NCBI GenBank assembly: GCA_028023455.1
Contig: JAQFVV010000009.1
Location: forward strand, 3,968,001 to 4,032,000
DNA length: 64,000 bases
Reading direction: 5' to 3'
Source: Epiperipatus broadwayi
Taxonomy: Eukaryota; Animalia; Onychophora
The position numbers and the translations under genes are program-made. This document shows, piece after piece, positions 6,301-58,257 of this stretch (its first letter is position 1; every line of letters begins with the position of its first letter). A model generated the notes under the pieces. That model was not told the origin of the DNA. It saw nothing but the letters and a program-made list of their open reading frames with translations, and did no database searches.

Positions 6301-6902
6301 GCACTCAGTAATGAAGAGAAAATATTTAAGAAATATTTTTTTGAAAAAACAAATCATTTTGACCTTCTAAATTAAATCAAGTCAAATAAAACAAAAAATA
6401 AAAATAATAACTTATTACAATCTTGAAACGAATATTAATTAACTATTAAATAAAATGGTTGGTTATACTATTTAGTTTGTTAAATAATCTACTAATCCAC
6501 ATATCCATTAATCACTCAAAAATATATACTTGTAAAATCATTAAAGATATTTAATGTAATTCAAATGTTTTACTGTAAATGTAATATTATTTACTGTAAT
6601 TAAAATATGAAAATGAAATGAAAAGATGATACAGACCTACATGCATACACATATGCTGCTACATGAATATTAAATCATCTTGACTAAAATATGACTGATA
6701 TGGCTATGGGTTAAATATATTTCACCAATTATAATACCTACTTATGGGTGGTGTGCTAATGAATAATAGATCAGAAAATCACCTAAACAAATACCAACCA
6801 CTATTTAATAAATAAATAAAACAACTTTGCACCAACTTAACTGGTATATCAACAATTCCTGTAATAATCCACCCTCCTTCCTTGCATTAAATACTTCCTC
6901 AA

Positions 6903-7358
<456 letters not shown>

Positions 7359-7819
7359 TGAAAAATGCTTGCAAAAATTGCTACCCAAATTCATAAGCAA
7401 CTCACATATAAGGTTTTAGACCATTAACAGAAAATTTTTTAAAATTTCAATGCTCTTTCTTTTTTTTTTTAATAAAATGCAGCTATTCACTAGTGATACA
7501 ATATAATTTAATTACTTGTGCTCATTCAGAAGGTCACAATATATAACATAAATAAAGGTGCTTATACTGTGCCAAATACATACAAAGTGTTAGCATCTTT
7601 ACAGAAAGTCTCTTTCACAAAAATAGATTTAAAATCTGCATTTTACCAGATACCAATCTCAAAAAAAACCCACAGAATTGTTCATTGTTAATATTATGTA
7701 CCCCCATCAATTTGTATATATGAAAACATTTTTCAGCAAAGATCGATATGTTATTGCAAAACATAGAGTGAGTTATTCTCTACTTTAATGCTATACTTTT
7801 TACTGTCCAGTTAGAAGAA

Positions 7820-9700
7820 GAGCTAACAGATAAAGTGGGCACTAGATTAAACACTGCCAAATGCATTTGGGCAATTGGAATATATGATAAATAAGAATAG
7901 ATAATACCCCAACCCTGAAAAAGTGGGAGCTGTAAAAGAAGTAGCCACTCCTAAGAATGTAAAAGATTTAGAAACATTTCTGGGACTGTTAAATTTTTAC
8001 AAAAGTTTTTTTTATGATAAATCACACATATTAACACCATTGTATGAGTTATTACATAAGGAAAATGCTGGAAATGGAATGAAGAGCATAAAATTGTATT
8101 CCAAAAATCCAAGGACTTATTAATGTTATAAAAACTTTTAGTGCATTATAGAAGTGATCAGAAAGTGATGATTACTAAAGATGCTTCAGATTTTGGAGTT
8201 GGAGCTGTCATCTCATATTGGTATAGTGAAAGCAAACATCTGAATCACTTATGCCTTGAGAACATTATCAACAGCTGAAAAAAATTATTGTCAATTAGAT
8301 AAGGAAGCTCTGGCTATAATATTTGCAATAAAGAAATTTCATTAATACATATGTCAATGGAGTTTTACAGAATGTATGAATCATTACCCTTTACTTGGAA
8401 TTTTTGAAAAAGAATAAAAAATGCTTGTATATGCAAGTCAGAGACTTTTAAGGTGGATTAACATATTAGCTGCCTATTACTATGAATTAGTTTACAAGCC
8501 AATAAAAAAGATTACATATACGGATGTGGATGCCTTACCTGGGAAAGAAAGAGTTTAGTGGAAGTTTACAGAAGTAAACATGTTAGATGCATTAAATATT
8601 ATAGAGAATCTAAATAATTCTAAAGTCACCAAATATATAAATAGAGACCCTGGATATAGTAAACTAAAAAACTGGATCTGAGAAGGATGATCAAAAAGTC
8701 AACCAAGTTGCATTACTATGGTGATTTAGAACACTCACCAGAGTTTGTCAATCTGTAACGGCTGTATTCTGATGATTGAATGAGTACTCATACCAATGAA
8801 AGGATGAAAATAAGTGCTAAAGTTATTACATAAAGGACATCTAGCAGTTATGCAGATGAAGGTGCTCACATGTTCATGTGTGGTGGCCTAAAATGAAACA
8901 GCAAAATTGAACAAACAGTAAAAACCTGCCATGATTGCCAATCTGGCTGATTTACCAAAGAAAGTTTATAAACCATGAATAGTGGCCATGGTAGTATATC
9001 CATATAGATTATGCAGAACTTTGAATAGACATTTAATATTAATAATCATAGATTCATGTAGCAGATGGGCCAAGTATAAACTTGCAAAAACTATAAGTAC
9101 TAAATTTATCATAAAAGCTCTACAGGAAGTTTTTGACACTCATAGATATCCTGAGATCCTGGTATCTGATAATGGAGCAGGGTTTATTTCTGCAGTTTTT
9201 GGAAACTACTTAACAGATAAAGGCATTCATCATGTTTTTATTCTAGCCTATCATCTGCCTCTAATGGACTATTGGAAAAAACAGTCCAAAGTTTGAAATC
9301 TGCCTTGAGAAAAGTAAAAATTACAAATATGGAGAAGTACTGATAGAAATCATGTTCTACCAGCATTTTATTCTAGTGGAACGAACTGTGAAACACCTGA
9401 AGAATAACTGTTTGATAGAAAATGTCATACTCATTTATCTAAACTTTTATCTGTAAAAAGAAATCAGAAAATAGTCCTACTAGTGAAGATATATACCATG
9501 CAAACTTCAAGAAATTTAGAACTTGGCAAAACTGTATAAGTTCAAGATATATTAAAAAAGAACTGGATACCTGACACCATAGGTGACAAAGTATCTGAAG
9601 TCATACAAGTAATTAAGCTCAAAGTGGATTGTGTGTCAGAAGACATATAAATTATTTATGCCAGTGATTCTCTAAAATGTTGATTATGATATATAAAAGA
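7820..9700 (+). pseudogene. Gypsy pol 3' part: RT C-terminus, RNase H, integrase
   Basis: PEKVGAVKEVATPKNVKDLETFLGLLNFY; DASDFGVGAVIS; KNYCQLDKEALAIIFAIKKFH; HxxH..WWPKM..CxxC integrase zinc finger; DSCSRW..ILVSDNG integrase core. Confidence 0.9.
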
Positions 9701-14748: not shown

Positions 14749-15669
14749 AGGGAGTGTTTCATCATCTAAAAATAATATTTCCGATCATTGAAAAAAAATG
14801 TATATATTAAAAAGATTCTGGCAATATTTGTGAAGTTATTAAGAAACAAACCAACAAACAATCATGGTTTTCTACCCCTTTTTATAAATATATTGACTAA
14901 AACATACAAGGATGTAACCACTGAGATTAATGCATGTTAGGGACATCCACAGTAACTATCTTTGAATTGAATGTCCTAACTAATTATAATGGTCAAACCA
15001 GGTACCCAGCCATATTTCCTGACCATTCTTTCTATAAAATGGGTTTATGTAAAGATAGCTTCTACTCCTTATCACTATAGATATTATTTATTTATATCTG
15101 CCATACAGCAGGTTAGGGTGCTATTTCTATAATTAAAAAACATCTGTAGATAAGGTTCAAATCCCTCCCTAGCTTCTTTGATATTAAACCCTCCATTACT
15201 CACAATTGGCTCAAGTAGACATTGCAATGCATCACAGCATAAGCATTTTAGTTGACAACAAACATGAACCACACTTATTTTAATCAAAACAATAATAACA
15301 ATAATAAAAAAACAGTATCCCTATCTCCGTATTGTGATCATATAGACTGATATAAGAAATTCATGGAAAATGACTAGTGACTATTTTTAAATGAGTTACA
15401 TATACAAAAATTAGGTTAGTCCTGAATATTTAAAGACTACAAACGTTCATTCACAACAATGATAACAAAAAAAGTTAATTAATAAAAATACCAAAAAAAA
15501 AAAAAGATTAATAAAAAAATAAAAATGAAATAAATAAAAATATAATAACATATTCATTGATATACAAGTTAAAAATATTAATTAAAAAATACCCTATGAA
15601 ATTATTAATGGATGTGCACTTATGAAATATATAAGATAAAAATATTAATTACAAAATATACTATGAAAC

Positions 15670-16060
15670 GGACACTCATTGCTAAGGTTTACAGCCTTGT
15701 TAAAACTATTACTGAAATAATAGTGAGCGTTTGATAAAATTTATAATTACAACTTTAAATTATCGTAATATATTTCTTTCTATAAGATCTTTTCATTAAC
15801 TCGTAGTAAATCGTAAGATTTCGCGAGTATTAATGTATTATAAGAATTGTGGACTTAATTAGTGAAGTATTTAATAGCTTCACACTCTTAGATCAAAACA
15901 CTTCTGCTTCACCTATTTATATATAAAAGTAGGTCGAAGTAAAGAAGGGATTCTCTCTTTTCTTCATAGCGTAAGCATGTGTTTTAAAGACCTACAGAGG
16001 TCCCTAGTGACGATTTTTTCGGACGCTCATTGCTAAGGTTTACAGCCTTGTTAAAACTAT
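15670..16060. mobile_element. 391-bp structured insertion: 351-nt unit plus ~42-nt terminal direct repeat, 8-bp TSD
   Basis: ggac(a/g)ctcattgctaaggtttacagccttgttaaaactatta at 15670 and 16021; TSD tatgaaac at 15662-15669 and 16061-16068; CpG-retaining; multiple hairpins. Confidence 0.85.
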
Positions 16061-16929
16061 TATGAAACATTATATAATTTTAGTTGTTTCTAAGAGTTTA
16101 TTATGTACTTTAATTACTTATTTTAGGTCTATTAATAAGAAATGAACTAATAAATTTTACCTATTTATTTATTATTGTGTGATTCATACTTTTACATCTT
16201 TTAAATACTTACTTTAAATTCAGCAGTTTGATTTTCTGCAGATTTAACTTCTATAAGGTTTATTCATATGACTGGTTTCTTGATTAAGTCAATTTACATA
16301 GATATTAAAGAAGTCCAGTTATGATGAGCTGAATATGTTCATGTAGCTTCAACTGCCATTGGTTTCTGACCTGCCTTCAGTTTCCATACTTAGAATGATT
16401 CCATGGTTAGAATTTTATTTTTAACAGTTTCCATTTCCATTAAGTTGAAATTCAACATCATTCTCTCGTTTATTGTTTACACACACACTCTCTTTTACTT
16501 TATTTTCTAATTTTAGTAAATGAATCTTTGTAGATGGATATCTTAACTAATGGTAAATATGTTTTAAAAAATTACGAGCTTTCTTTTGATTTAAAGAATG
16601 CTCTTTATGATTATTAGGTACATTGTGATAAGATCAGAACATACACCAGGATCTTAGCTGGCCATCACAAATATATCTATATAAGACATATTTTTCATCT
16701 TTACATGGTCAGTCTGTCTCAGTTCCTTGCACTTCATTTCAGCACTTTAGTTTGATTGTGATTTAAAAGGTCAATGACAAGTAAGACAACACCAGAAAAG
16801 ACAAATTAACAAGACACGTGACAAAATATTTTTAGCTTTTTGATAGTTTTTTTCTTATCACTGATTTTTGAAAAGTACTTTTTTTAATCTGACATAATAT
16901 CTAGCACATAAATTCTTTGCTTAGCTGTA

Positions 16930-19900
16930 CTGTAACTGAAACAAATATAATTTCACTTTAGATTAGTTATATTACAAAGGTATATTTAAAAAAAAATGTG
17001 CGTATGTTAAAAGTTAGTTTATGAATTTGCTCGTATTATTAAATATTTATATTATGTGAGAAATCTAATGGTAAAATGCACGGTAAAGGAAGAAAGAAAA
17101 CTTGTTTTGATGTGTGCAAGAAATTTGAATTGGGAAATCTAAAAATGATATTAAAATTTTGGAATTAGTAATATTTTAATAATTATCATTTAACATCTAA
17201 ATGGCAGCAATGAGTTTGCTTTCTTTCTAAATCATTAACTAATGTAAATAAAAAGAGAGGGGGGAAAAAACTATTTTTTTCCTTTCACTCATTTATCTAT
17301 CAAATCATAATAATTTGTTCACTTATGTATCAAATCATGATATGATATTTGTAAAATTATTTCCACAATATGTAAAGAGAATAAAGAAAATGTTTTGCAA
17401 AAGACATGTTGCATTGGTGAAAGCATATTGTTGAACAATATCAGGTAGAAACAAATAAGCTTGAAACAAGCATTGAAGGGATTCCTGTCCAGTCCAGGCA
17501 GTCTAGTGTATTTTAGTTTATTTGAAGACTCATCTCAAAAAGTGATGTTGTAATGATCCAATGCCGAGGAGAGAAACCACTGATTAAAATTGTTTTTCAC
17601 TGTAACTTGAATAGTCATATCTTGCTAATCATTTTACAGTATTTTTAATACTCCAGTTATAATAGCAAGTAAGATAATTTTATCTAGCAGAAAAGTATCT
17701 ACTATGTGTGGCTACCAGCTAAAAGACCTAGAAAATCCAGTCGGATCCAGAAACTAGCACTGAAATTTGCCAAAACCAGTCAGTGCCTGCCTTAATAACA
17801 TTATGAAGTAGTAAATGGACAGTGATTTAAAAATTACTCAAGACCTACTGATACTATATCCAATGTAATATCACTAATGTTTTTGTTTTTCCTCTAGCAT
17901 CACCAATTCCTAGAAAAAAACTATATTAAAAAAACCATATCTGCAGAAAAACATAATTTGGAACAGTTTAAATATTTCATGTTGTAAGATCTTATCATTA
18001 TAGATATTAAAAGACATTAAACTTAAATTAAAAATATCTATTATTATTATATTTAATATATTGTATATGTATCAATAGTTGTGAGTATATGTGCAACAGT
18101 AATATACAGCTAATTCTCTTTTTACATGATGTTTGGTGCTCAAAATTTATGTGTAAAAAATAAATTGTACATATGGAAAATAAAAAGATAGGTTCCAGAT
18201 GTAAAAAAATCAACAAAAATAATTAAATAAACCATATTAAAAAATTCATTAATGATGTACACTTTTGCATGCTATCAAATTTTACTTCATAAACATTGCA
18301 TATAAATAAAAATGAATTAGAGAAAGATAAATTTCATTTGAAAAATAAAAAAATGTAAGAATCAATGAAATGAAAATTAGGCAGAATTTATAATTTGAGT
18401 TTTGAGATTTTATTTGTTGTCATTTTCTGATAATAAATGCATATGTTTGCATATGATTGGAATACCATTGCTATCACTAAATCTTGCAATATCACTGCCA
18501 TCACCAACAATACTTTGATCATTCGGCTCTTCTTTCATTAAAGAAGTTCTCTTTGTAAACTCTTGAACAATTTATGTGCTGTGGTACTGTTATACTTTTA
18601 TGAATGAATTTACTAATTAATGGCTGGATTTGTATAATGGCTAGGTTTTTATACATGTCTCTATAAGATGACAATAGTGATTTCAGATCTCATTGAAACT
18701 TTGAAGCTCATTTCTCATTAGGATCATACTTGACAAAATGATTACCTAATTGGTTAGCAAGATCAAGATATTTAATTAAATTAGAATTTACACTAGATCA
18801 TCATCTTCGTGAACACTGTCTTCTTTAGAACAGGAGTTTGAAGAACAATATCATTTTCCCCTCATTTAATGCTTTATCAACTAAGAACAATTCATCGACA
18901 TCTTCAGATGACATGATTGAATCTTTCTCCACCAATTGAGTGGGTCATTACCATGATGTTGGAAAATTCAGTCATATTAGAGTTAACAGGATCTTTGCTT
19001 TTCAGATATTCTGGCCAAATAGGTTTCCAACATCCATTCAAAGTTGAAGATCTTAATTCAAGTAATGTTAATCCAAATTGATTCACACAATCCAGAATTG
19101 CAAATTTCATCCACACATCTATGACACTTGATGCTTTAACATTTAATTTGTCCAAAATATATTGAAATGTTCAATTTACATAATAAGTTTTAAATGTTGC
19201 AGTAATTCTTTAGACTAATGGTTGAATCAAAAATGTGGTATTAAGTGACAAAAAACAAAATGATACATTTGGGTATTCCAAGACTGGATGACCATGGAAA
19301 TTATCTAGAATCAATAGAACTAGAAATTCTAGATCTTTGGCATTTATATATCATCTAACTTCTGGAATAAAACATTCATTGAACTACTCCAATAAAATTT
19401 CAGTGGTGACCTAAGCCTTTTTATTTGCTATACAGTAAACTGGTAAGTTATTCAAATCTACATCTTTTATTGAACATGTTTTTTTGGGCTTGATTATCAA
19501 GCAGAGGTTTCAATATGTAATCTTCTGAAGCATTGGATCAGAATACCAAAGTGAAGTGATCTTTTACTACTTTAAAACCACCAGCAGCTTTCTACGATTT
19601 TGCTATGTAAGTTCTACTTGGCATTCTCTTCCAAAAAAGACCACTTTTATCAACATTCCAAACTTGATCAAAATTGTATTCTCCATCTTCAATAATTTTA
19701 GTTAATTTTTTGGAAATTCTTTGGTAGCCATTTCGTCTGTGGATGCAGTTTCATCTGTTATTTTAAGGTTATGAAGTGCATGTCTTTCAAGAAACTTTTT
19801 CATCCTTCCCATACTTGCAAAAAATTTACATTCCCTATTTAACTCAGATGAAGTGTCTGGCTCAATTTCTTTAATTTGTTTGTAAATTTTTAGTGCTGTT

Positions 19901-21260
19901 TGCTTGATGGCATTTCCATCTACTGGTGCTCTTTTTTCTGACATTTCTTCTATCCACATTACTAAGAGTTTTTCCATTTTTTCTTAACAATATTTGTTGT
20001 GTAAAATGATGATTTAGCATTCAATTTTGTTGCAGAATATATTATCTTTCTAATAGCAGCTTTTTTATCTTTAATACTTGTTATAGTAGCTTCATGTAAA
20101 TCAAAATGCTTTTTTACAGATATTGCTCCTTCTCTGGTTGTAAGACAATCTAAAATTTGAATTTTGGTGTCCAAAGAAATTGCTTTCCTCATCTTTTTTG
20201 TAGGTGGATTATTTGACATTATATGAGGCTACAAAAAAATATTTCAGATTTAATTAACAAAATATAAATTCAAAAATATGCATCCAATGTATAACTTACT
20301 ATCTATTGATTCTTGAAAAAATTAAAAAATTAAATTTAAACAAAATTAAATTTTTTTAACATCAACACCAATTAGGAACATTTTTTTTTTAAAAAAAAAA
20401 ACCTAATGTCAAAATGCAAACAAAGCATCAATACCAAAAAGGCACTTCCCCTTTCAAAACAAAACATCAAAAATGTTACAATGCAGACAAGCAAATTCCC
20501 CCCATTTGCAAGAATATTTCCAAAAAGTGGATTTTTGTTTTTAAAATAATGAGAAATAAAAAGACAAAATATTTTTTTTTAATTAGATGATAATAACAGA
20601 TATAATTTTTAAAAAAATTTTTTTTAACCAATCCCGTTATTTTAAAACAACTTATATAGAAAGAAAAATTTTCTTCTTTTTTTAAAACTTATATTATTTC
20701 AAAATCATGCAAAAAAAATTGTGTAAAAAGACAATTAAGTGTGTATTCATTGTTAATAAAGTGTTACATTATTTCTATTAATACATTTAGTTTGGATTAG
20801 TTTATCTAACTCAATTCAAACATTATGCTTTTAGTACCCAATACACTAATAATATAAACAACCCTGAGAAATCATGCAATACACTGCGGGATATATAGGG
20901 ATGGTGGTAATAATTTGTAAATGATGATGATCATGTTTTACTAAGTTTTCTAAAAAACAAACTTTCTATTCAGAAGTTTGACACTTGAGTTTCATTTTTT
21001 ATTTCTATTTTATTAAAACTAAAAAACAAATAAAACTTTTGGGAGAACTTGCATTTATGTCATAAGCCATCATAATTATCATTTGATTAATAGATTATAT
21101 AAATGAATTGAATCATTTTTAAATTTTTATTAATCATTCAACTTTTATCTTATATAAATATTTATTGTGAATTAAGATTTATGGTACATCTTTGATTCCT
21201 GGTTCATGATTACTATTGCATAAGGAAATACCATTACATATTTAGTACCCAACATAGAGT
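16930..21260 (+). repeat. Ancient duplicated segment, copy 1 (16930-18071 + 20738-21260), split by a ~2.7-kb insertion
   Basis: Colinear with 24310-26150 at ~75% by eye (e.g. aaaggaagaaagaaaacttgttttgatg, gagagaaaccactgattaaaatt, aatgatgatgatcatg). Confidence 0.85.
18660..20219 (-). mobile_element. Decayed Tigger/pogo (TIGD1-like) DNA transposase
   Basis: RKAISLDTKIQIL psq-HTH; MEKLLVMWIEE..FxASxG..KFLERH CENP-B HTH; QVWNVDKSGLFWKRMPSRTY and IQPL DDE-domain motifs; stops and frameshifts present; TIRs not recognised. Confidence 0.9.
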
Positions 21261-21576
21261 ATGAACATCCCCTTTTTATACCCAATATGACTTCTGTATA
21301 TTATATATTTGGTGCAACAACATTGTGGCCTGAACATCTCTTTTCTTATGCTTACATTTCATTTATGTGTAATCATATAATGTACTGAATATTAGAGCAT
21401 GAATACATTCAGTATATTGCGGTATATAATAAGTATAATACAATAAATGTTTGGAATGAAAAATAAGATTAGTGTTTATACAAAAAAATCTATGCACTAA
21501 TATTTTATGAAAGCAACAGTTTAAGCCTATATAAGTAAGATAATATTTAATAAATGGCAGTGTGTGTGTATATATA

Positions 21577-22118
21577 TAAAATTAAGAGCATGCTAATTAG
21601 TTCTAAACAACCTTTTTTTTTTTTATTTATGATAAATGCTCTTAATTTTACATATTTGTAAGTGCAAGCTATATATAAGTCATGTGAAATCTGACTTTTT
21701 ATTATTACTATTATTATTTTGCTGTTGGGCTTTGGCTAAATTAAATGGCTAAGCCTACTAATATATGGAGTATCTGAATGAAGTTCAGGCCCATATGATT
21801 TTTTCAGTTGGAGAGCTGACATTAAAGACATGTAGATGTCTAAAAGTTTAAGATCTTCTTCTAACAATTAACTTTTAGATAAATGCTTTGCTTGAGTTGG
21901 TTTTTTGAATCTAATGTCCCAACTCCTCACTGAAGAGACCCATAGGTTGAAACCAGTCTGGGGATGGGGACAATCCAAAATAAAATGATTTGAATGCCTT
22001 CTCTTGTAGTAGCATCTATCATAAATAAAAAAAAAGCTTGTTTAGAGCTAATTAGCATGCTCTTAATTTTACATATTTGTAAGTGCAAGCTATATATGTC
22101 ATGTGACATCTGACTTTT

Positions 22119-22122
<4 letters not shown>
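21577..22122 (+). mobile_element. Retrozyme-like unit (family 2): 421-nt period with terminal redundancy and a central HHR
   Basis: Direct repeat atgctcttaattttacatatttgtaagtgcaagctatatat..gtcatgtga(a/c)atctgactttttatta at 21636 and 22057; HHR at 21925-21963; homologous to the 2.1-2.6 kb unit (tttt.aatctaatg, gtcatgtgacat.tgactt). Confidence 0.75.
21916..21971 (+). ncRNA. Near-canonical type-I hammerhead ribozyme
   Basis: cctca-CTGAAGA-gacc-cata-ggtt-GAAA-ccag-TC-tgggg. Stem I is 5 bp plus distal gtccc/gggac; stem II is 4 bp; predicted cleavage after C21958. Confidence 0.82.

Positions 22123-22188
<66 letters not shown>
22122..22188. repeat. (TA)n microsatellite
   Basis: About 33 TA units read directly. 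Confidence 0.97.
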
Positions 22189-22191
<3 letters not shown>

Positions 22192-29529: not shown

Positions 29530-29573
29530 ACCAACTGATGATTGCTGGTTTAGCATGAAATACGTATATTGGT
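29530..29573 (+). ncRNA. Family-1 type-I minimal HHR
   Basis: accaa-CTGATGA-t-tgctg-gtt-tagca-t-GAAA-tacgta-TA-ttggt. Helix III is the palindrome ATACGTAT; the stem II closing pair is mismatched. Confidence 0.75.
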
Positions 29574-29840: not shown

Positions 29841-30450
29841 CATATAGATAAATAAGCATTTATTTTTATAGCGTCTGTATATAATTGTAATTACATTCAT
29901 ATCGGCCTTTCAAGCGAATTGTGCAAATGCTTTGCGAGTGTTAAATAATAAATGAATACCCTCTGACCAATACAAGATATAGAATTTATGCAGGAATAAA
30001 AAGAATCCCTCTTATTCCTACGACTCAAATATTTATATATGAGCAAATCTGAAGTACTGGCACTCGCAAAGCATTTGCACAATTGGCTTGAAAGGCCGAT
30101 ATGAATGTAATTACAATTATATACAGACGCTATAAAAATAAATGCTTATTTATATATATGATTAAGTTTCAGTTGGAATGATGTTTAGTAAATTCTAGAA
30201 AATTTCATCAGCATCATTTATTCAGACATTGTATATAGTAATTTAAAGTGCCGTTCTATCGTCACGCCTTCTGTGCCAGTACTTCAGATTTGTTCATATA
30301 TAAATATTTGAGTCGTAGGAATAAGAGGGATTCTTTTTATTCCTGCATAAATTCTATATCTTGTATTGGTCAGAGGGTATTCATTTATTATTTAACACTC
30401 ACAAAGCGTTTGCATAATTGGCTTGAAAGGCCGATATGAATGTAATTACA
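29841..30450. repeat. Young inverted triplication A-B-A'-C-B'-A' of a CpG-retaining module
   Basis: 29841-29940 vs 30061-30160 are reverse complements with 2 mismatches in 100 bp; 30273-30450 is the reverse complement of 29886-30063 with about 5 mismatches in 178 bp. Confidence 0.95.
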
Positions 30451-33738: not shown

Positions 33739-36635
33739 ATGGCCCTTATTCCCAGGAGGCTCTAAAGCCATCAACCAAGGCAATGGTTGGTAGCCGAAGG
33801 TGGAGGGTGCTAAGAATCCCCTGATTTCGGACCAAGGCTGCCATTTGATGATGACTTTTTATTTAGGTACTTACAACTGCAGATCACTTTTAAGTGAAGG
33901 AAGATTGCAATAATTAGAAGAAGAACTGTCTTATATTAAATGGGACATTATTGGACTTTGTGAAGTTAGAAGAAAAGGTGAAGAGACAATTGATTTAAAA
34001 AGTGGACATGTACTGTATTATAAAGGCACAAATATTGAAAATACAAGTGGAGTAAGATTTATTATAAATAAAAAGTGGAAGAACAACATTGTTGAGATTG
34101 ATGGCATATTGCACAGAGTGGCAAGATTAATTATACAACTTAATAGCAGATACCAAATGCAGATGATTCAGGTTTATGCCACAACAGGTTCTCATAGTGA
34201 TGAAATAGTAGAAGATTTTTATATGATCAGAGTAAACAACATTTTAAAATTGTTATGGGAAACTTTAATGCTAGAATTGGTAAACAAATGAAAGTTGAAA
34301 GTGCTGTAGGTAATTTTGATTATGGTATTAGAAATGAGAGAGGATATAGACTTGTGGAGTTTGCAGAAAAAGAAAAACTTTATATTATGAATTCTTTTTT
34401 TGAGAAAAATGTTAAAAGAAAATGGACATGGAAGCATCCAAATGAAGGTACAGCAGAATTGGATTATATTTTGACTAACAGAAAATACATATTTCAAGAT
34501 TGTAATGTTTTTAATAAATTTAACACAGCAAGTGATCATCAATTAATAAGATGTAAGATACATGTTAATGCAAAACTAGAGAGACAAAAAATATTTAAAA
34601 AAAAACAATATTTACCATTGATATTCCTAATCTTCAGAAACATTCTAATGAATTTAAATTAGAACGTACAAATCGATTTCAAGTACTGTATTAGTAGATT
34701 TTGAACAAGATTCAGATTTGAATGAAATTAATATGAAAATAACTGATGCATTTTTAAAAACTGCAACAAAGATAGCTGGTAGAAAAAAGCAACAATTGAC
34801 CAATAAAATTTCTACTGAGACTAGAGAATTTACGAAGAAAAGAAGGAATATGAAGATATACAAAAATGATGCATTAAAAAGAATTGAATATCTCGAATTT
34901 TTTAAAATGGTGCGGAAAAGAGTTGAAAATGATGTAAGAAAGTAAAACTGTGAACTAGTAAGGAAAGCTATAGAAGAGAATAAAAGTCTCAAGAATGTAA
35001 AACAACATTTTGGTATGGGTAGAAAATTTATATCTGCAATAAGAAAAAAAAGATGGAATTATTACTAAAAAGAGAGATGACATCATGAAATGGGTAGAAG
35101 ACTTTTATCAAGAATTATATGGTAATAAAGAACAAGTACCTCCTATATCTATTACATTTTCCAAATTGCCCTGAATTTTAAATGAAGGGGAAGACATGCA
35201 ATTAAATGTATGAAGAAAGGACAGTCTTGAGGTATTGATGGACTTATAATTGATATATTAAAAGAAACAAGTGAAGAAATAGAAAGTTATATACCAAATG
35301 TCTAAATGATAAAGATGTACCAGATAATTGGAATAATGCAGTAATAATATTATTTTAAAAAGGTGATAAAAATATATTAGAAATTACAGACCTATCAGCC
35401 ATTTATCAGTTTCATACAAAATTTTTACCATGATAATTACAACTCATCTACAGAGAACATTAGATTTATACCAACCAAGAGAACAAGCTGGATTTAAAAG
35501 TGGTTTTAGTACAGTAGATCATTTCCAGGTATTGTGAGATAGAAAGGACAAATGCATGAGTTGCCATTATGCTTTGGATTTGTAGATTATGAAAAGGTAT
35601 TTGATTCTATAAACATTTCTTCAGTGATTAAAGCATTGGATCATCAAGATATAAATCCAGGATATTGTCCATATTTTAAAGAATATTTATAATAATGCAA
35701 CAGCAGCAATTAGATTACATAAGGTTACTGGGAAAGTCAACATTGAGAAGGGTGATACAGAGTGACTCCATATCTCCAAAACTTTTTACAGCAGTGCTGC
35801 ATGAAGTATTTTGTGGATTAAAATGGGAAGCTAAAGAAATGAAAATAAATGGAGATTATTTAAGTCATTATATTTTGTAGATGATGTAGTTGTTTTTGCA
35901 AATAATTCTTTAGAGCTGCAGGAAATCTTACAGGAGTTATCAGATGAAAGTATGACTAAAGATAAATGTTAAAAAGACTAAAGTAATGTTTAATCGATTT
36001 GCTCAAAATAGGAAAATAAAGATTGAATATGATGAATTAGAAGTTAACAGTTACAAATACCTTGGTCAGATTATTAATATGGATGGAAACATAATGGATG
36101 AAATTAATCATAGAATTAAACTTGGTTGGAGTGCTTTTGGGGGAAATAACTTGATACTAAAAGGAAATATACCTATGTGTTTGAAAAGGAAGGTTTTTAA
36201 CAAATGTGTTTTACCAGTTCTTACTTATGGATCTGAGACTTGGACACTTAATAGAAGAGCAATACAGAGACTTCAGACCACTCAAATAACTATGGAGAGA
36301 TGCATGTTGGGAGTAACAAGAAGAGATCGAAAACGCGATATATGAATAAGAGAACAAACAGGTGTTACTGACCTCATTGAAAAAATTAAAAGACTTAAGT
36401 GGAGTTGGGCTGAATATATTGCTAGAAGAGATGATAATAGATGGACAATTAAAATCTTAAACTGTGGATTCCAAGTGATTGTAAAAGACCCAGAAAGATA
36501 CATGTGAGATGGATGGATGAAATAAGAAAGCATGTAGGGATGATATGGAGAAGAGAAGCTAAAGCTCAGAGATGGATTGAACTTTTGAGACCTCCATCCT
36601 GCAGTGGATTGGTAATGGTTGCTGATGATGATGAT
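33739..36635 (+). mobile_element. Near full-length, inactivated RTE-clade LINE (APE + RT)
   Basis: LGTYNCRSL..WDIIGLCEVRR, MGNFNARIG, ELDYILT, SDHQLI (APE); NYRPIS, EQAGFKSGFSTVDH, FVDYEKVFDSI, YKYLGQ, VLPVLTYGSETW (RT); ends in a (GAT)n tail; several stops and frameshifts. Confidence 0.95.
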
Positions 36636-36697: not shown

Positions 36698-36737
36698 CCA
36701 ACTGATGAGTAGTGGTTCAGTATGAAATGCATCTTGG
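36698..36737 (+). ncRNA. Family-1 type-I minimal HHR (intact core)
   Basis: ccaa-CTGATGA-gtagtg-gtt-cagtat-GAAA-tgca-TC-ttgg. Helix III is the palindrome ATGCAT; predicted cleavage after C36733. Confidence 0.8.
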
Positions 36738-37059
36738 GTATCATAGATCTTTATCATGTCTTTGATCATATTTTCATGATTATATCCATTCACAAGGTGT
36801 TAAAAGTGGATAGAAACTAGTCGCTACCTTGCATGAGAGCAGTGTATTGAAAATTACGCTACAGAAATATTATTCATTATTGAATAATCTTTAGACTAAT
36901 GAATGACTAATAAAAATTATTAATGTACTTTCATTAAATGATTAGTGTCAAAGTTGTGAGGACAGAACATTGGACATTTATCAAATTTATTGTAGTAATT
37001 TGTTCTCTATATATATATTGAACAATGATAAATATGGGTGTACGAGATTGTAGTTTGGG

Positions 37060-56800: not shown

Positions 56801-56960
56801 TATAAACAAAGGAAATAAATTATATTAGCGATATGCCAAATTTTATATGTTGGTCTTGACAAGGCAACGTACAATATGTCAGCGCACAACTAATAATAAT
56901 AGCTAATGCTCCCCAAGTAAACATTTTTTTTTAAAAAAAAAAAAAGACTATAAATATTTA

Positions 56961-56966
56961 ACTTAC
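56961..56966 (-). promoter_or_regulatory. 5' splice donor (CAAG|GTAAGT)
   Basis: Perfect consensus donor exactly where channel homology ends (RKEFQ, phase 1). Confidence 0.9.
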
Positions 56967-58257
56967 CTTGGAATTCCTTACGAGCTGCACTGACGTTTGT
57001 AACAATATTAGCCACCTGGCCAAGTACGGTGGCAAAAAGAAGTAACCCGAAAACTAATTCCACAATAACAAATATGTACTCATGGTTAGTACGGGGTCGG
57101 GGCAAATCACCTATATTTGTTAATGCTAACGTACTCCAATAAAAGGAGTGTAAATAATCCCGAACTACATCCTTAGATCTTTCGTTTTCGCTTGGCCACT
57201 TGTTGCTTTCAAACTTCTGAGAACATTTAAAATATATACAGGCATTCCAATGGAAAATAACCATCAAGTAATGGACCATAGATAACGATCGAAAAATATT
57301 AGGATAATTAGTATGTCGCTCAGTTCTATCCAAAAATGTCCAAAACCGATAAATTTTAACAAGCCTGAAACATCTAAGAAATGAATTATATCCAATGGAT
57401 AGATAAAGGAAGTCCAGCGGGAGGAGGCACAAGCAATCGATGTAAAACATAGTAGAGTTAATATAATGCTGGCGCAGTTTAACGGCGTCTGTTTGCAAAA
57501 CACCGTCCTCTAAATAGCCGGTGCGGAAGTGAAAGGCGATATCCAGTATATAAAGTAAATCCGCTAAGTAATCAAGAGTAAACCAAGGTAATATAGTTTC
57601 AGTGGATATTTCTTGTAAAGCAAACCTATAAACAATGACCCACAAATTGTAAAGGAAGGCAACACTAACTACCATTGACCAGTAATAACTTAGTCTCCCC
57701 GAGGGATCAAAAACAAATGTCCATTTACAGCCACTCTTATCAGTATTAGAATTTGAATTTTCATATTTTTCAAATTTTGTTTTTATTTCTTTGCGGCGCG
57801 CTTCTCTTACTTTGCGAGTAATTTCAAGATCAGAGTTGCCGCTTGTTTTGTGAATAAAAGCTACCGATTCTTTGGAGAAATGACGCTTTCTCTCCCCAAA
57901 GTGCAGCTTATTGCTCACTATCTCCAGTAAGCTTTGTTTGGACGTTGATTTTCCTTTGATATCATTTGTTTTTCCGGAATAAATAGGAGACGCTAAATTG
58001 ATTTTATTACCGCTAGAACTTAATCTTTGTCCAATGAGACGGGTTCGATCCGAATACGCGACACCTGGAATAATTCGTGGGCCATTAGCTGTGACTGTAC
58101 CGCCCTCCATCTTGACCGATTGCGGATCACTGACCACAGCAATCTCTTCAAGCTCTTCATCTGCATCATGATCTTTAGCACACGGCGTATACTTGACAGC
58201 TGCTTTGCCAGTATCACCTAAATGCCGCCGTGTCAAACCACTCGCCATTTTTTTCAT
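56967..58257 (-). CDS. Cyclic-nucleotide-gated cation channel alpha-type subunit, first coding exon (N-terminus, S1-S6, pore, start of C-linker); resembles the arthropod CG42260-type subfamily
   Basis: Open 430-codon exon with FVFDPSG..YYWSMVVS, FRTGYLEDG, RxFRLxKIYR (S4), ERHTNYPN, FHWNAC, YWSTLALTNIGDLPRP (pore), FATVLGQVANIVTNVSAARKEFQ. The last ~25 aa of the track ORF are intron read-through. Confidence 0.95.

Follow-up and report, generated by a model that had tools for sequence, protein, structure and literature searches.

The 64-kb window, that is, the whole stretch of DNA analysed in this work, carries an insertion of about 391 bases composed of one 351-base unit and a repetition of its initial 40-odd bases, with an 8-base copy of the target on each side. 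This young non-coding insertion with terminal redundancy is genuine. The reading that it resulted from the recent insertion, as a partial tandem, of a small, non-coding, hammerhead-less and non-autonomous retroelement with a 351-nt unit, copied from a template longer than that unit, has roughly even chances of being correct. The parts of the insertion are located as follows.

15662..15669, no strand assigned: left target copy TATGAAAC, whose final C doubles as base 1 of the repeat (8-mer background 8.7e-4)
15669..15711, plus strand: terminal repeat copy 1, 43 nt, with 98% identity to copy 2 at a spacing of 351
15712..16019, plus strand: unit body between the repeats, 308 nt, non-coding, where most hairpins and CpGs are located
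16020..16062, plus strand: terminal repeat copy 2, 43 nt, in which the G at 16025 completes a 7-bp stem with 15715-15721
16061..16068, no strand assigned: right target copy TATGAAAC, whose initial TA is also the repeat end

The 8-bp target site duplication described in the first-pass annotation was read on both sides of the insertion, and the direct repeat with one mismatch was likewise present, with a length of 43 nt instead of the 42 nt previously given. The two repeat copies (CGGAC...CTATTA) are spaced 351 nt from start to start, the insertion comprising 1.12 units, and they differ only by an A at 15674 in copy 1 versus a G in copy 2, which represents a CpG-to-CpA change; in blastn within the window, the repeated stretch reached 49 nt with a single gap. 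The 8-mer background given above is the fraction of window positions at which an identical 8-mer recurs at the repeat spacing (+/-3), as determined by k-mer self-comparison of the window. The target duplication is unambiguous only for TGAAA, since the final C on the left side and the initial TA on the right side overlap the repeat ends, and the background of a 5-mer match is 2.1%. Additionally, TGAAA(C) in the right flank is similar to the way in which the unit itself continues at 15712-15718 (C-TGAAA-T). Direct repeats of at least 30 nt at a spacing of 100-1000 were found four times in the 64 kb, that of the 351-nt unit included, and two of the other three are found in hammerhead-family regions. 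The left flank is itself locally duplicated at a 67-bp spacing (15560-15601 / 15627-15668), with TATGAAA recurring there; an empty-site argument based on this duplication was not significant (p = 0.085), and local BLAST with 15477-15546 masked revealed no paralogous empty site in the window.

This architecture is the same as that of a neighbouring hammerhead element. The unit at 21572-22124, which contains a complete type I hammerhead (25.7 bits in Rfam, in agreement with the descriptor search), presents a 70-nt partial tandem with a period of about 420, seen in the element at 21636-22124, together with an inverted 5'-truncated piece, all embedded in a (TA)n tract. Hammerhead units in the window measure about 400-460 nt, compared with 351 nt for the unit described here. 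The form of the unit at 21572-22124 is the complex insertion form of Penelope-like elements, which routinely insert as partial tandems, or pseudo-LTRs, with a 5'-truncated copy placed before the full one (PMC8557442). Partial tandems are still formed by Naiad and most Chlamys clades, which are devoid of the hammerhead, and by non-autonomous derivatives (PMC8557442). An adjacent inverted 5'-truncated copy and/or a microsatellite target is frequent in Penelope-like insertions, but not obligatory. It has also been argued that animal retrozymes are non-autonomous Penelope derivatives (bioRxiv 10.64898/2026.07.22.740005), and metazoan retrozymes are low-GC repeats whose target duplications, if any, exceed 4 bp (PMC7229834).

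The preferred reading can be expressed as a sequence of putative steps. A trans-acting reverse transcriptase, which the Penelope-like elements of the genome would most likely provide, would cut TATGAAAC in a staggered manner, and priming would take place on the plus-strand RNA where the target end can anneal, at UA[C]UGAAA. More than one unit length would then be copied from a longer template, which could be a tandem-copy transcript, a circle, or two molecules connected by a template jump, and repair would leave 5-8 bp of the target duplicated. The product would be a 5'-truncated copy of 40-43 nt placed head-to-tail with a full unit, that is, a 43-nt pseudo-LTR. From the DNA we infer that there was an RNA intermediate, which strand is the sense strand, which enzyme was the partner and that the unit is multi-copy. 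Some observations count against a Penelope-type insertion, namely that no second copy was found in the window or in the collections searched, that an inverted partial copy and a hammerhead were not found either, and that the target is not a microsatellite.

Concerning coding content, no reading frame longer than 52 codons was found in the unit, even around the circle or in mitochondrial codes, which agrees with the earlier statement that it contains no ORF. The sequence also bears out that poly(A), terminal inverted repeats and TG..CA are absent from the insertion ends, and an A-rich tail is missing from both of them. The unit has a GC content of 30% and carries nine CpGs in 351 nt, with an observed/expected ratio of 1.13, whereas this ratio is 0.29 in the window and 0.15-0.20 in the flanks, and the hammerhead families found in the window have only 0-0.27, far below the unit. 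Therefore, since CpGs are retained in a depleted window and the sole difference between the repeats is the CpG-to-CpA change, the insertion is young, as had been proposed on account of its CpGs.

These ends were incompatible with several known classes. An LTR retrotransposon, TRIM or plant retrozyme was rejected due to the absence of TG..CA, the absence of a primer-binding site in the CTGAAATAATAG that follows the repeat, the GACGATTTTTT preceding copy 2, which is not purine-rich, and a duplication of up to 8 bp versus the 4-6 bp of such elements. A hAT-type or other cut-and-paste miniature element was discarded because no inverted arms are found at the ends despite the 8-bp duplication, and a Helitron was rejected on end features.

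Regarding its distribution, no second copy of the unit was detected by blastn within the 64-kb window, where the unit showed no similarity to any Penelope-like sequence or to anything else and formed no 351-bp tandem array. Its exact patterns had no match in metagenome, viral or prokaryote genome contigs, nor did its strings in the full text of the literature searched; as for its predicted peptides, the 52-codon frame had no homologue and a 40-aa ORF had no exact match. Between 40 and 59% of the unit's 31-mers were present in four runs (75-115 million letters each) from two species and 34% in a DNA run of a third species, with 0 in runs of two further species from the same studies. Since runs as small as these, from two species, and the DNA run of a third contain words of the unit, it is probably multi-copy or abundant, its family status being read from these word shares alone, with no second copy seen.

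No recognisable ribozyme had been noted in the unit, and this was confirmed by Rfam and by a hammerhead descriptor. Rfam returned nothing under E 1 and no ribozyme at E up to 10, while a circular three-helix hammerhead descriptor, which recovered the hammerhead at 21930 as a control, found nothing credible on either strand of the unit. Searches for hammerhead cores that allowed one mismatch or a swap of the N3:N8 pair had no usable outcome, and neither strand of the circle contained a hammerhead even when the core could have any paired N3:N8. The Rfam scan covered the contiguous genome sequence, so that a motif requiring more than 43 nt upstream together with sequence downstream of the 16062/15712 junction was covered by the hammerhead descriptor alone. 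By-eye threading of an HDV-like double pseudoknot on the 5' domain, in which P1 would run from +1 with G-U wobbles, gave no credible P2 or P1.1 and was rejected, and hairpin-ribozyme loop motifs on the minus strand were also rejected by eye.

The unit is predicted to be strongly folded. As a plus-strand circle it reached z -4.1 to -5.0, below every segment of a background of 118 strand-windows of this window (mean -0.09, sd 1.14, minimum -3.35), and as a linear RNA z -3.6. The plus strand is favoured as the RNA, considering that its circular fold, with 64% of bases paired and 13 G-U pairs, scored z -5.0 versus -3.2 for the other strand. The circle with the G variant of copy 2 is predicted to be 5.4 kcal/mol more stable than that with A. 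Three of the stems claimed in the first-pass annotation were predicted as hairpins, which fold on both strands as DNA palindromes, with boundaries for the z-scores picked post hoc.

15794..15835, plus strand: hairpin whose CpG-rich stem is capped by a GUAA tetraloop, predicted -11.5 kcal/mol, z -3.9
15862..15883, plus strand: hairpin GUGAAG(C)/(G)CUUCAC, predicted -8.7 kcal/mol, z -4.8 (scored as 15860-15885)
15901..15947, plus strand: imperfect long hairpin, predicted -18.3 kcal/mol, z -6.1 (scored as 15899-15949)

The remaining structures of that annotation fared less well, as the gacct/aggtc hairpin is weak and the copy-1 form of the three-way junction, folded by itself, was not significant (z -1.2). 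Together with a T run, this junction might evoke a Pol III transcript.

15671..15732, plus strand: three-way junction resembling a D-armless tRNA, made up of a 7-bp stem, an anticodon-like hairpin (UUUACAG loop) and a T-like arm of 5-6 bp (5 bp as drawn by ARAGORN)
16014..16019, plus strand: T6 run immediately upstream of the second repeat copy; in the circular fold the run pairs with UAAAAU

A better-paired junction is formed when 16022-16062 is joined to 15712-15732 across the head-to-tail junction. The mitochondrial mode of ARAGORN made a tRNA-Val-like call on the dimer at the default threshold, and in the genome sequence at lowered thresholds only; since the same mode made 23 calls in 64 kb, this call is near chance level and, given such a high false-positive rate, can be taken only as a lead. 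Standard ARAGORN found no tRNA in the unit and Rfam at E up to 10 no tRNA, 5S or 7SL match, so a SINE-type Pol III head was rejected. By eye, only weak matches to the A and B boxes were noted (6/9 each). The T6 run could mark the unit's 3' end or act as a terminator of Pol III type, although chance alone would be expected to give a T6 or A6 run with such a base composition.

The comparison with known systems places the unit close to metazoan non-LTR retrozymes, which are tandem repeats with type I hammerheads (PMC7229834). It has in common with them a non-coding unit within the 150-450 bp range (here 351), a low GC content (here 0.30), a head-to-tail arrangement of more than one unit, a target duplication above 4 bp, a highly base-paired unit and the same genome habitat. 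However, their defining hammerhead is missing from both strands of the unit, only 1.12 units are present and known from DNA alone, and its CpG level is far above that of the hammerhead families of the window. Penelope-like partial tandems, including those of Naiad, Chlamys and MRC1 (PMC8557442), share with it the succession of a 5'-truncated and a full copy for which the hammerhead is dispensable, and non-autonomous non-coding derivatives are known among them, the neighbour at 21572-22124 showing the full complex form. In contrast, the 351-nt unit carries neither an inverted partial copy nor a 30-40 bp tail, its target TATGAAAC lies in AT-rich DNA and not in a microsatellite, and its 351 nt are far below the size of the non-autonomous elements described. 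Additionally, canonical animal Penelope elements and retrozymes have the hammerhead that this unit lacks. SINEs are also small and non-coding with a target duplication, and the tRNA-shaped 5' module and T run of the unit might suggest Pol III; however, no credible tRNA, 5S or 7SL head and no A-rich or LINE-derived tail were seen, and terminal redundancy is not a SINE trait.

Considering the alternatives, an event at the DNA level is unlikely, though the likeliest of them. According to this hypothesis, a staggered break would have caught either some 1.1 monomers from a tandem repeat with a 351-bp period, such as a satellite or the subrepeat of an rDNA spacer, or else DNA copied from an extrachromosomal circle in rolling-circle fashion, and microhomology would have created an apparent duplication. 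Tandem arrays do yield a monomer plus part of another, as seen in dispersed satellite arrays and reintegrated extrachromosomal circles, and overlaps of 1-2 nt are found at both junctions. The abundance of the unit in very small, low-depth runs and its conservation in sister species would also fit a satellite or an rDNA spacer, and its hairpins, being palindromes, could be features of the DNA itself. However, a clean and exact 8-bp duplication is more typical of enzymatic staggered cuts, no array of the unit exists in the 64 kb, and retroelement insertion demonstrably makes such an architecture in this genome, as in 21572-22124.

The possibility that the insertion is the footprint of a small circular RNA, retrozyme- or viroid-like, is improbable. 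In that case, unit length would be generated by a divergent or novel self-cleaving motif, or by host enzymes at the tRNA-like junction, followed by ligation and reverse transcription around the circle. The first-pass annotation had treated as established that a monomer plus a partial repeat is what such reverse transcription leaves, and this step proved not to be specific, since Penelope-like partial tandems occur without a hammerhead (PMC8557442). An identical footprint is left when tandem arrays are transcribed or when the template jump is end-to-end. The annotation's inference of a retrozyme-like element was sustained insofar as the architecture matches the retrozyme-like elements of the genome, whereas the circular RNA, self-cleavage and viroid-like replicon that it invoked were left unsupported. 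Several observations are consistent with a circle, namely the 1.12 turns with a target duplication, the plus-strand circular fold and its degree of pairing, the best-paired three-way junction, which exists only across the head-to-tail junction, the right flank, which resembles the template just beyond the redundancy as if priming had occurred inside a continuous template, the CpG ratio of about 1.1, fitting a source that does not decay in a methylated genome, and the presence of unit words in small runs guessed to be RNA. On the other hand, no Rfam ribozyme under E 10 and no hammerhead on either strand of the circle was found, and each architectural feature is equally made by circle-free Penelope-type partial tandems. 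Viroid-like circular RNAs and plant LTR retrozymes share with the unit its size, its strong self-pairing and a redundancy compatible with a circle, but the unit has no ribozyme, viroid motifs, LTR, primer-binding site or polypurine tract and resides in an AT-rich genome of animal type. The bolder version, in which an abundant, hammerhead-free circular RNA of 351 nt would be released at the junction by tRNA-processing enzymes of the host or else by a self-cleaving fold of a new kind, ligated and retro-copied by a Penelope reverse transcriptase, has likewise a slim chance of being true.

A linear unit-length transcript running from GGAC to the T run, such as a Pol III product with a tRNA-like head, would be another, similarly doubtful source. 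It would have been retro-copied with one end-to-end template jump, and the course proposed for it, of low probability as well, has the cDNA start from about position 43, run off the 5' end and resume at the 3' end of another molecule, which is copied in full. Non-LTR reverse transcriptases are known to jump between templates. The 5' edge of the insertion at 15670 falls directly after the T6-equivalent position and 1-2 nt from the 5' end of the tRNA-like stem, and the internal junction joins a 3'-end U6(C) to a 5'-end GGAC, as this course would predict. However, the weak A and B boxes, the blank results of standard ARAGORN and the Rfam tRNA model, a mitochondrial-mode call near chance and a T6 run expected by chance all argue against it.

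It is still less probable that the insertion derives from organelle or foreign DNA copied into the nucleus, for instance from a mitochondrial control-region repeat with a tRNA-like structure. The undepleted CpG, the GC content of 30%, the T run, the hairpins and the mitochondrial-style tRNA-Val-like fold would suit such an origin, and mitochondrial DNA, which is always assembled from small runs, would explain the word shares. However, an 8-bp target duplication is atypical for insertions of organelle DNA, no coding or rRNA signal was obtained with any mitochondrial code or Rfam, the tRNA call is near chance level, and mitochondrial non-coding repeats are rarely about 97% conserved across species. 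Finally, a local rearrangement present as a single copy, in which no mobile element took part and the flanks are identical by chance, although suggested by the 67-bp duplication of the left flank with its recurring TATGAAA and by the lack of another copy in the window, is very improbable, since a 43-nt repeat with an exact and well-placed 8-mer is unlikely by chance, CpG and fold values stand apart from those of the flanks, and small runs from other species contain the words.

The hammerhead defines animal retrozymes and is assumed to be the maker of their unit-length, circularisable RNA. The 351-nt unit presents the insertion architecture of retrozymes, a comparable size and a genomic habitat in common with them, without a hammerhead. 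The finding would be ordinary if the unit were a satellite or an organelle fragment. If it belongs to an active family, however, the partial-tandem footprint may reflect the Penelope-type reverse transcriptase and not a circular RNA, which would advise caution against taking every "monomer plus a bit" for a fossil circle; alternatively, such an active family may point to another processing route for these RNAs. Should the circle hypothesis be true, an animal would be able to produce circles of retrozyme type independently of a ribozyme. With its strong fold and undepleted CpG, the insertion represents a convenient young copy for bench tests.

The insertion at 15662-16068 was confirmed, and the anatomy read by the first-pass annotation, a direct repeat with an 8-bp target-site duplication, was borne out: the terminal direct repeat of the 351-nt unit comprises 43 nt, its two copies differ at one position, and their starts lie 351 nt apart. 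The insertion and the transposon-derived features of the window are as follows.

8982-9296, plus strand: retroelement integrase remnant (core domain rve, E 1.3e-8)
15662-15669 and 16061-16068: target-site duplication of the 351-nt unit, TATGAAAC, directly outside the repeats
15669-15711 and 16020-16062: terminal repeat of the 351-nt unit, copy 1 and copy 2
18904-20219, minus strand: pogo/Tc5-type transposase remnant (HTH_Tnp_Tc5, E 6e-8; DNA-binding domain 19702-19977)
21572-22124: unit of about 420 nt that carries a hammerhead and has the full Penelope-style complex form
34255-34662: endonuclease/reverse-transcriptase fragment

A fraction of 8.7e-4 of the positions in the window have an identical 8-mer at the spacing of the target duplication (±3). 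The edges of this duplication are blurred, since the C of its left copy and the TA of its right copy are common to the repeat; thus, only TGAAA is unambiguous target duplication, and the background of 5-mer matches in the window is 2.1%. Just four direct repeats in the 64 kb, that of the unit included, reach 30 nt or more at a spacing of 100-1000; one of the others is of low complexity, one belongs to the 21572-22124 element and one (30081-30115 and 30416-30450, spacing 335) lies within the cluster of family 1, flagged earlier as a hammerhead-type repeat family. Just left of the insertion, 15560-15601 is repeated in direct orientation at 15627-15668 (88% identity, spacing 67). Each copy ends in CTATGAAA, so that the target motif recurs just upstream; continuation of this flank duplication across the insertion was tested and was not significant (p = 0.085).

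The pogo/Tc5 and rve remnants are CpG-decayed, indicating that the unit sits in old transposon-rich DNA. Across the AT-rich window GC is about 0.27 and CpG is strongly depleted (o/e 0.29), whereas the unit has nine CpGs with an o/e of 1.13, versus 0.15-0.20 in its flanks, 0-0.27 in the hammerhead families and 0.07 in the pogo-like remnant; about 4% of 351-nt windows reach nine CpGs. The only difference between the repeat copies, A15674 versus G16025, is a CpG to CpA change; with G at this position a 7-bp stem is fully paired, for a gain in stability of 5.4 kcal/mol. These observations uphold the earlier reading of retained CpGs as a sign of youth, as CpG retention and this single difference imply a recent copy whose source keeps its CpGs. 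Such a source could reflect uninterrupted recent activity, selection acting on the stems or an origin outside the methylated genome. Besides windows overlapping the unit, the 25 CpG-richest windows listed all fall at 56.8-58.3 kb, in an open reading frame of 455 aa, free of interruptions, that encodes an Ion_trans domain (56890-58257, minus strand, E 5e-29). This ORF, the main CpG-rich stretch of the window besides the unit (CpG o/e about 1.0, GC locally as high as 0.50), may represent an unmethylated gene, a retrogene or recently acquired DNA. Elsewhere, a long codon-like homopolymer block at 6805-7400 keeps several frames open on either strand, with I, L, R, F and V runs, and its Pfam matches were rejected as low-complexity noise; a palindromic hairpin at 61719-61822 matches the MIR6274 precursor model (40.6 bits versus a gathering score of 80, E 8e-5) and more probably represents an inverted-repeat element than a microRNA gene.

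Sampled 31-mers of the unit were recovered at 79-84% in four DNA runs from one sample of organism A, at 40-59% in four runs of only 75-115 million letters (two studies, organisms A and B) and at 34% in a DNA run of organism C. A single-copy neutral locus would not be expected to assemble from runs so small, and a capture target would also be expected in organisms D and E, whose runs from the same studies contained none of these words. The unit is probably multi-copy, or else an abundant RNA or organelle sequence, and the abundant form, judged indirectly from these words, is probably about 97-98% identical to the copy in the window and common to close relatives. Outside the window, exact patterns of the unit gave no match in metagenome, viral or prokaryote contigs, and its predicted peptides matched nothing.

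It was verified that the unit contains no reading frame longer than 52 codons, even around the circle and in mitochondrial codes, in agreement with the absence of an ORF noted previously. The absence of a recognisable ribozyme likewise held. Rfam gave no match at the gathering threshold in the whole window, and on 15300-16500 the best of eight weak matches, none a ribozyme or tRNA, had an E of 1.6. Among hammerhead cores sought in the unit dimer on both strands, allowing one mismatch or a pair-swapped N3:N8, only GUGACGA and UUGAUAA were seen, neither with a usable GAAA or helices, and the one match to a circular three-helix descriptor (G15.1, C16.1 and a 288-nt "helix II") was not credible. 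The same descriptor cleanly recovers the control hammerhead at 21930. Rfam is blind to motifs that need more than 43 nt upstream of the 16062/15712 junction, where the repeat joins the unit body head-to-tail, together with downstream sequence; the descriptor fills this gap for hammerheads only. Therefore, the unit lacks a hammerhead.

Regarding the fold, the linear plus strand reached -79.8 kcal/mol (z -3.6) and the minus strand z -2.3. Folded as circles, the plus strand gave z -4.1 when it carried the base of copy 1 and -5.0 when it carried that of copy 2, versus -2.6 and -3.2 for the minus strand, this asymmetry being due to 13 G-U pairs in a fold with 64% of bases paired. The plus strand lies beyond all 118 background strand-windows of 351 nt drawn from the window (mean -0.09, sd 1.14, minimum -3.35). 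The hairpins named in the first-pass annotation were predicted individually and the structure, as modelled, is real. With the copy-1 sequence, the proposed three-way junction did not reach significance (z -1.2). The version that spans the head-to-tail junction was called a D-armless tRNA-Val(UAC) by ARAGORN in metazoan-mitochondrial mode, but with 23 calls from that mode in the window, or about a 12% chance per unit, it is kept as a shape and not as a tRNA.

The step from monomer plus partial repeat to reverse transcription around a circular RNA, previously termed established, is too strong, since Penelope-like elements typically insert as partial tandems, a 5'-truncated copy followed by a full copy forming a pseudo-LTR, often with an adjacent inverted truncated copy, and hammerhead-less clades (Naiad, most Chlamys) and non-autonomous derivatives do likewise (PMC8557442). 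A preprint also argues that animal retrozymes derive from Penelope elements as non-autonomous forms (bioRxiv 10.64898/2026.07.22.740005). The 21572-22124 element exemplifies this form: its inverted piece (21572-21624) matches 22024-22076 in reverse complement, its 70-nt partial tandem (21636-21705) equals 22057-22124, it adjoins a (TA)n tract at 22118-22190, and it retains no CpG. Its hammerhead (21924-21964) scores 25.7 bits in Rfam, under the gathering score of 34, yet the descriptor shows it to be a complete type I motif (CUGAAGA and GUC, with helices of 6, 4 and 2 bp). A second compact hammerhead-like motif at 36702-36745 (plus strand) also satisfies the descriptor (CUGAUGA and AUC, with helices of 4, 3 and 3 bp), with no Rfam match at an E of 5 or below; cores resembling it at 29535 and 30986, in family 1, fail both. 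Compared with the 21572-22124 element, the 351-nt unit has a like partial-tandem architecture without the hammerhead or the inverted piece.

The right flank, TGAAA(C), resembles the unit's own continuation just past the redundancy, C-TGAAA-T. This 5-nt match suggests a template longer than the unit, within which the nicked target end may have annealed and primed. Such a template might equally have been a circle, a tandem-copy transcript or two linear molecules linked by a jump, and the last of these would fit the T6 run at 16014-19, which immediately precedes the GGAC start and the 5' edge of the tRNA-shaped stem. Foremost among the rivals, and itself unlikely, is the capture, at the DNA level, of roughly 1.1 monomers of a satellite or rDNA spacer. 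A true circular RNA would have to be cleaved by a route unlike the ribozymes searched, and is ranked second as rather improbable. The same low probability attaches to the third, a linear Pol III-type transcript with a template jump. A mitochondrial or foreign fragment is slightly less probable again. Chance or local rearrangement is very improbable.

The original interpretation is thus partly supported. The unit works like the retrozyme and Penelope-type partial-tandem elements nearby, but the defining retrozyme hammerhead is absent and classing it as a retrozyme would be wrong. Until its copies are counted genome-wide, the most suitable name is a hammerhead-less variant of the retrozyme/Penelope-type partial-tandem elements.
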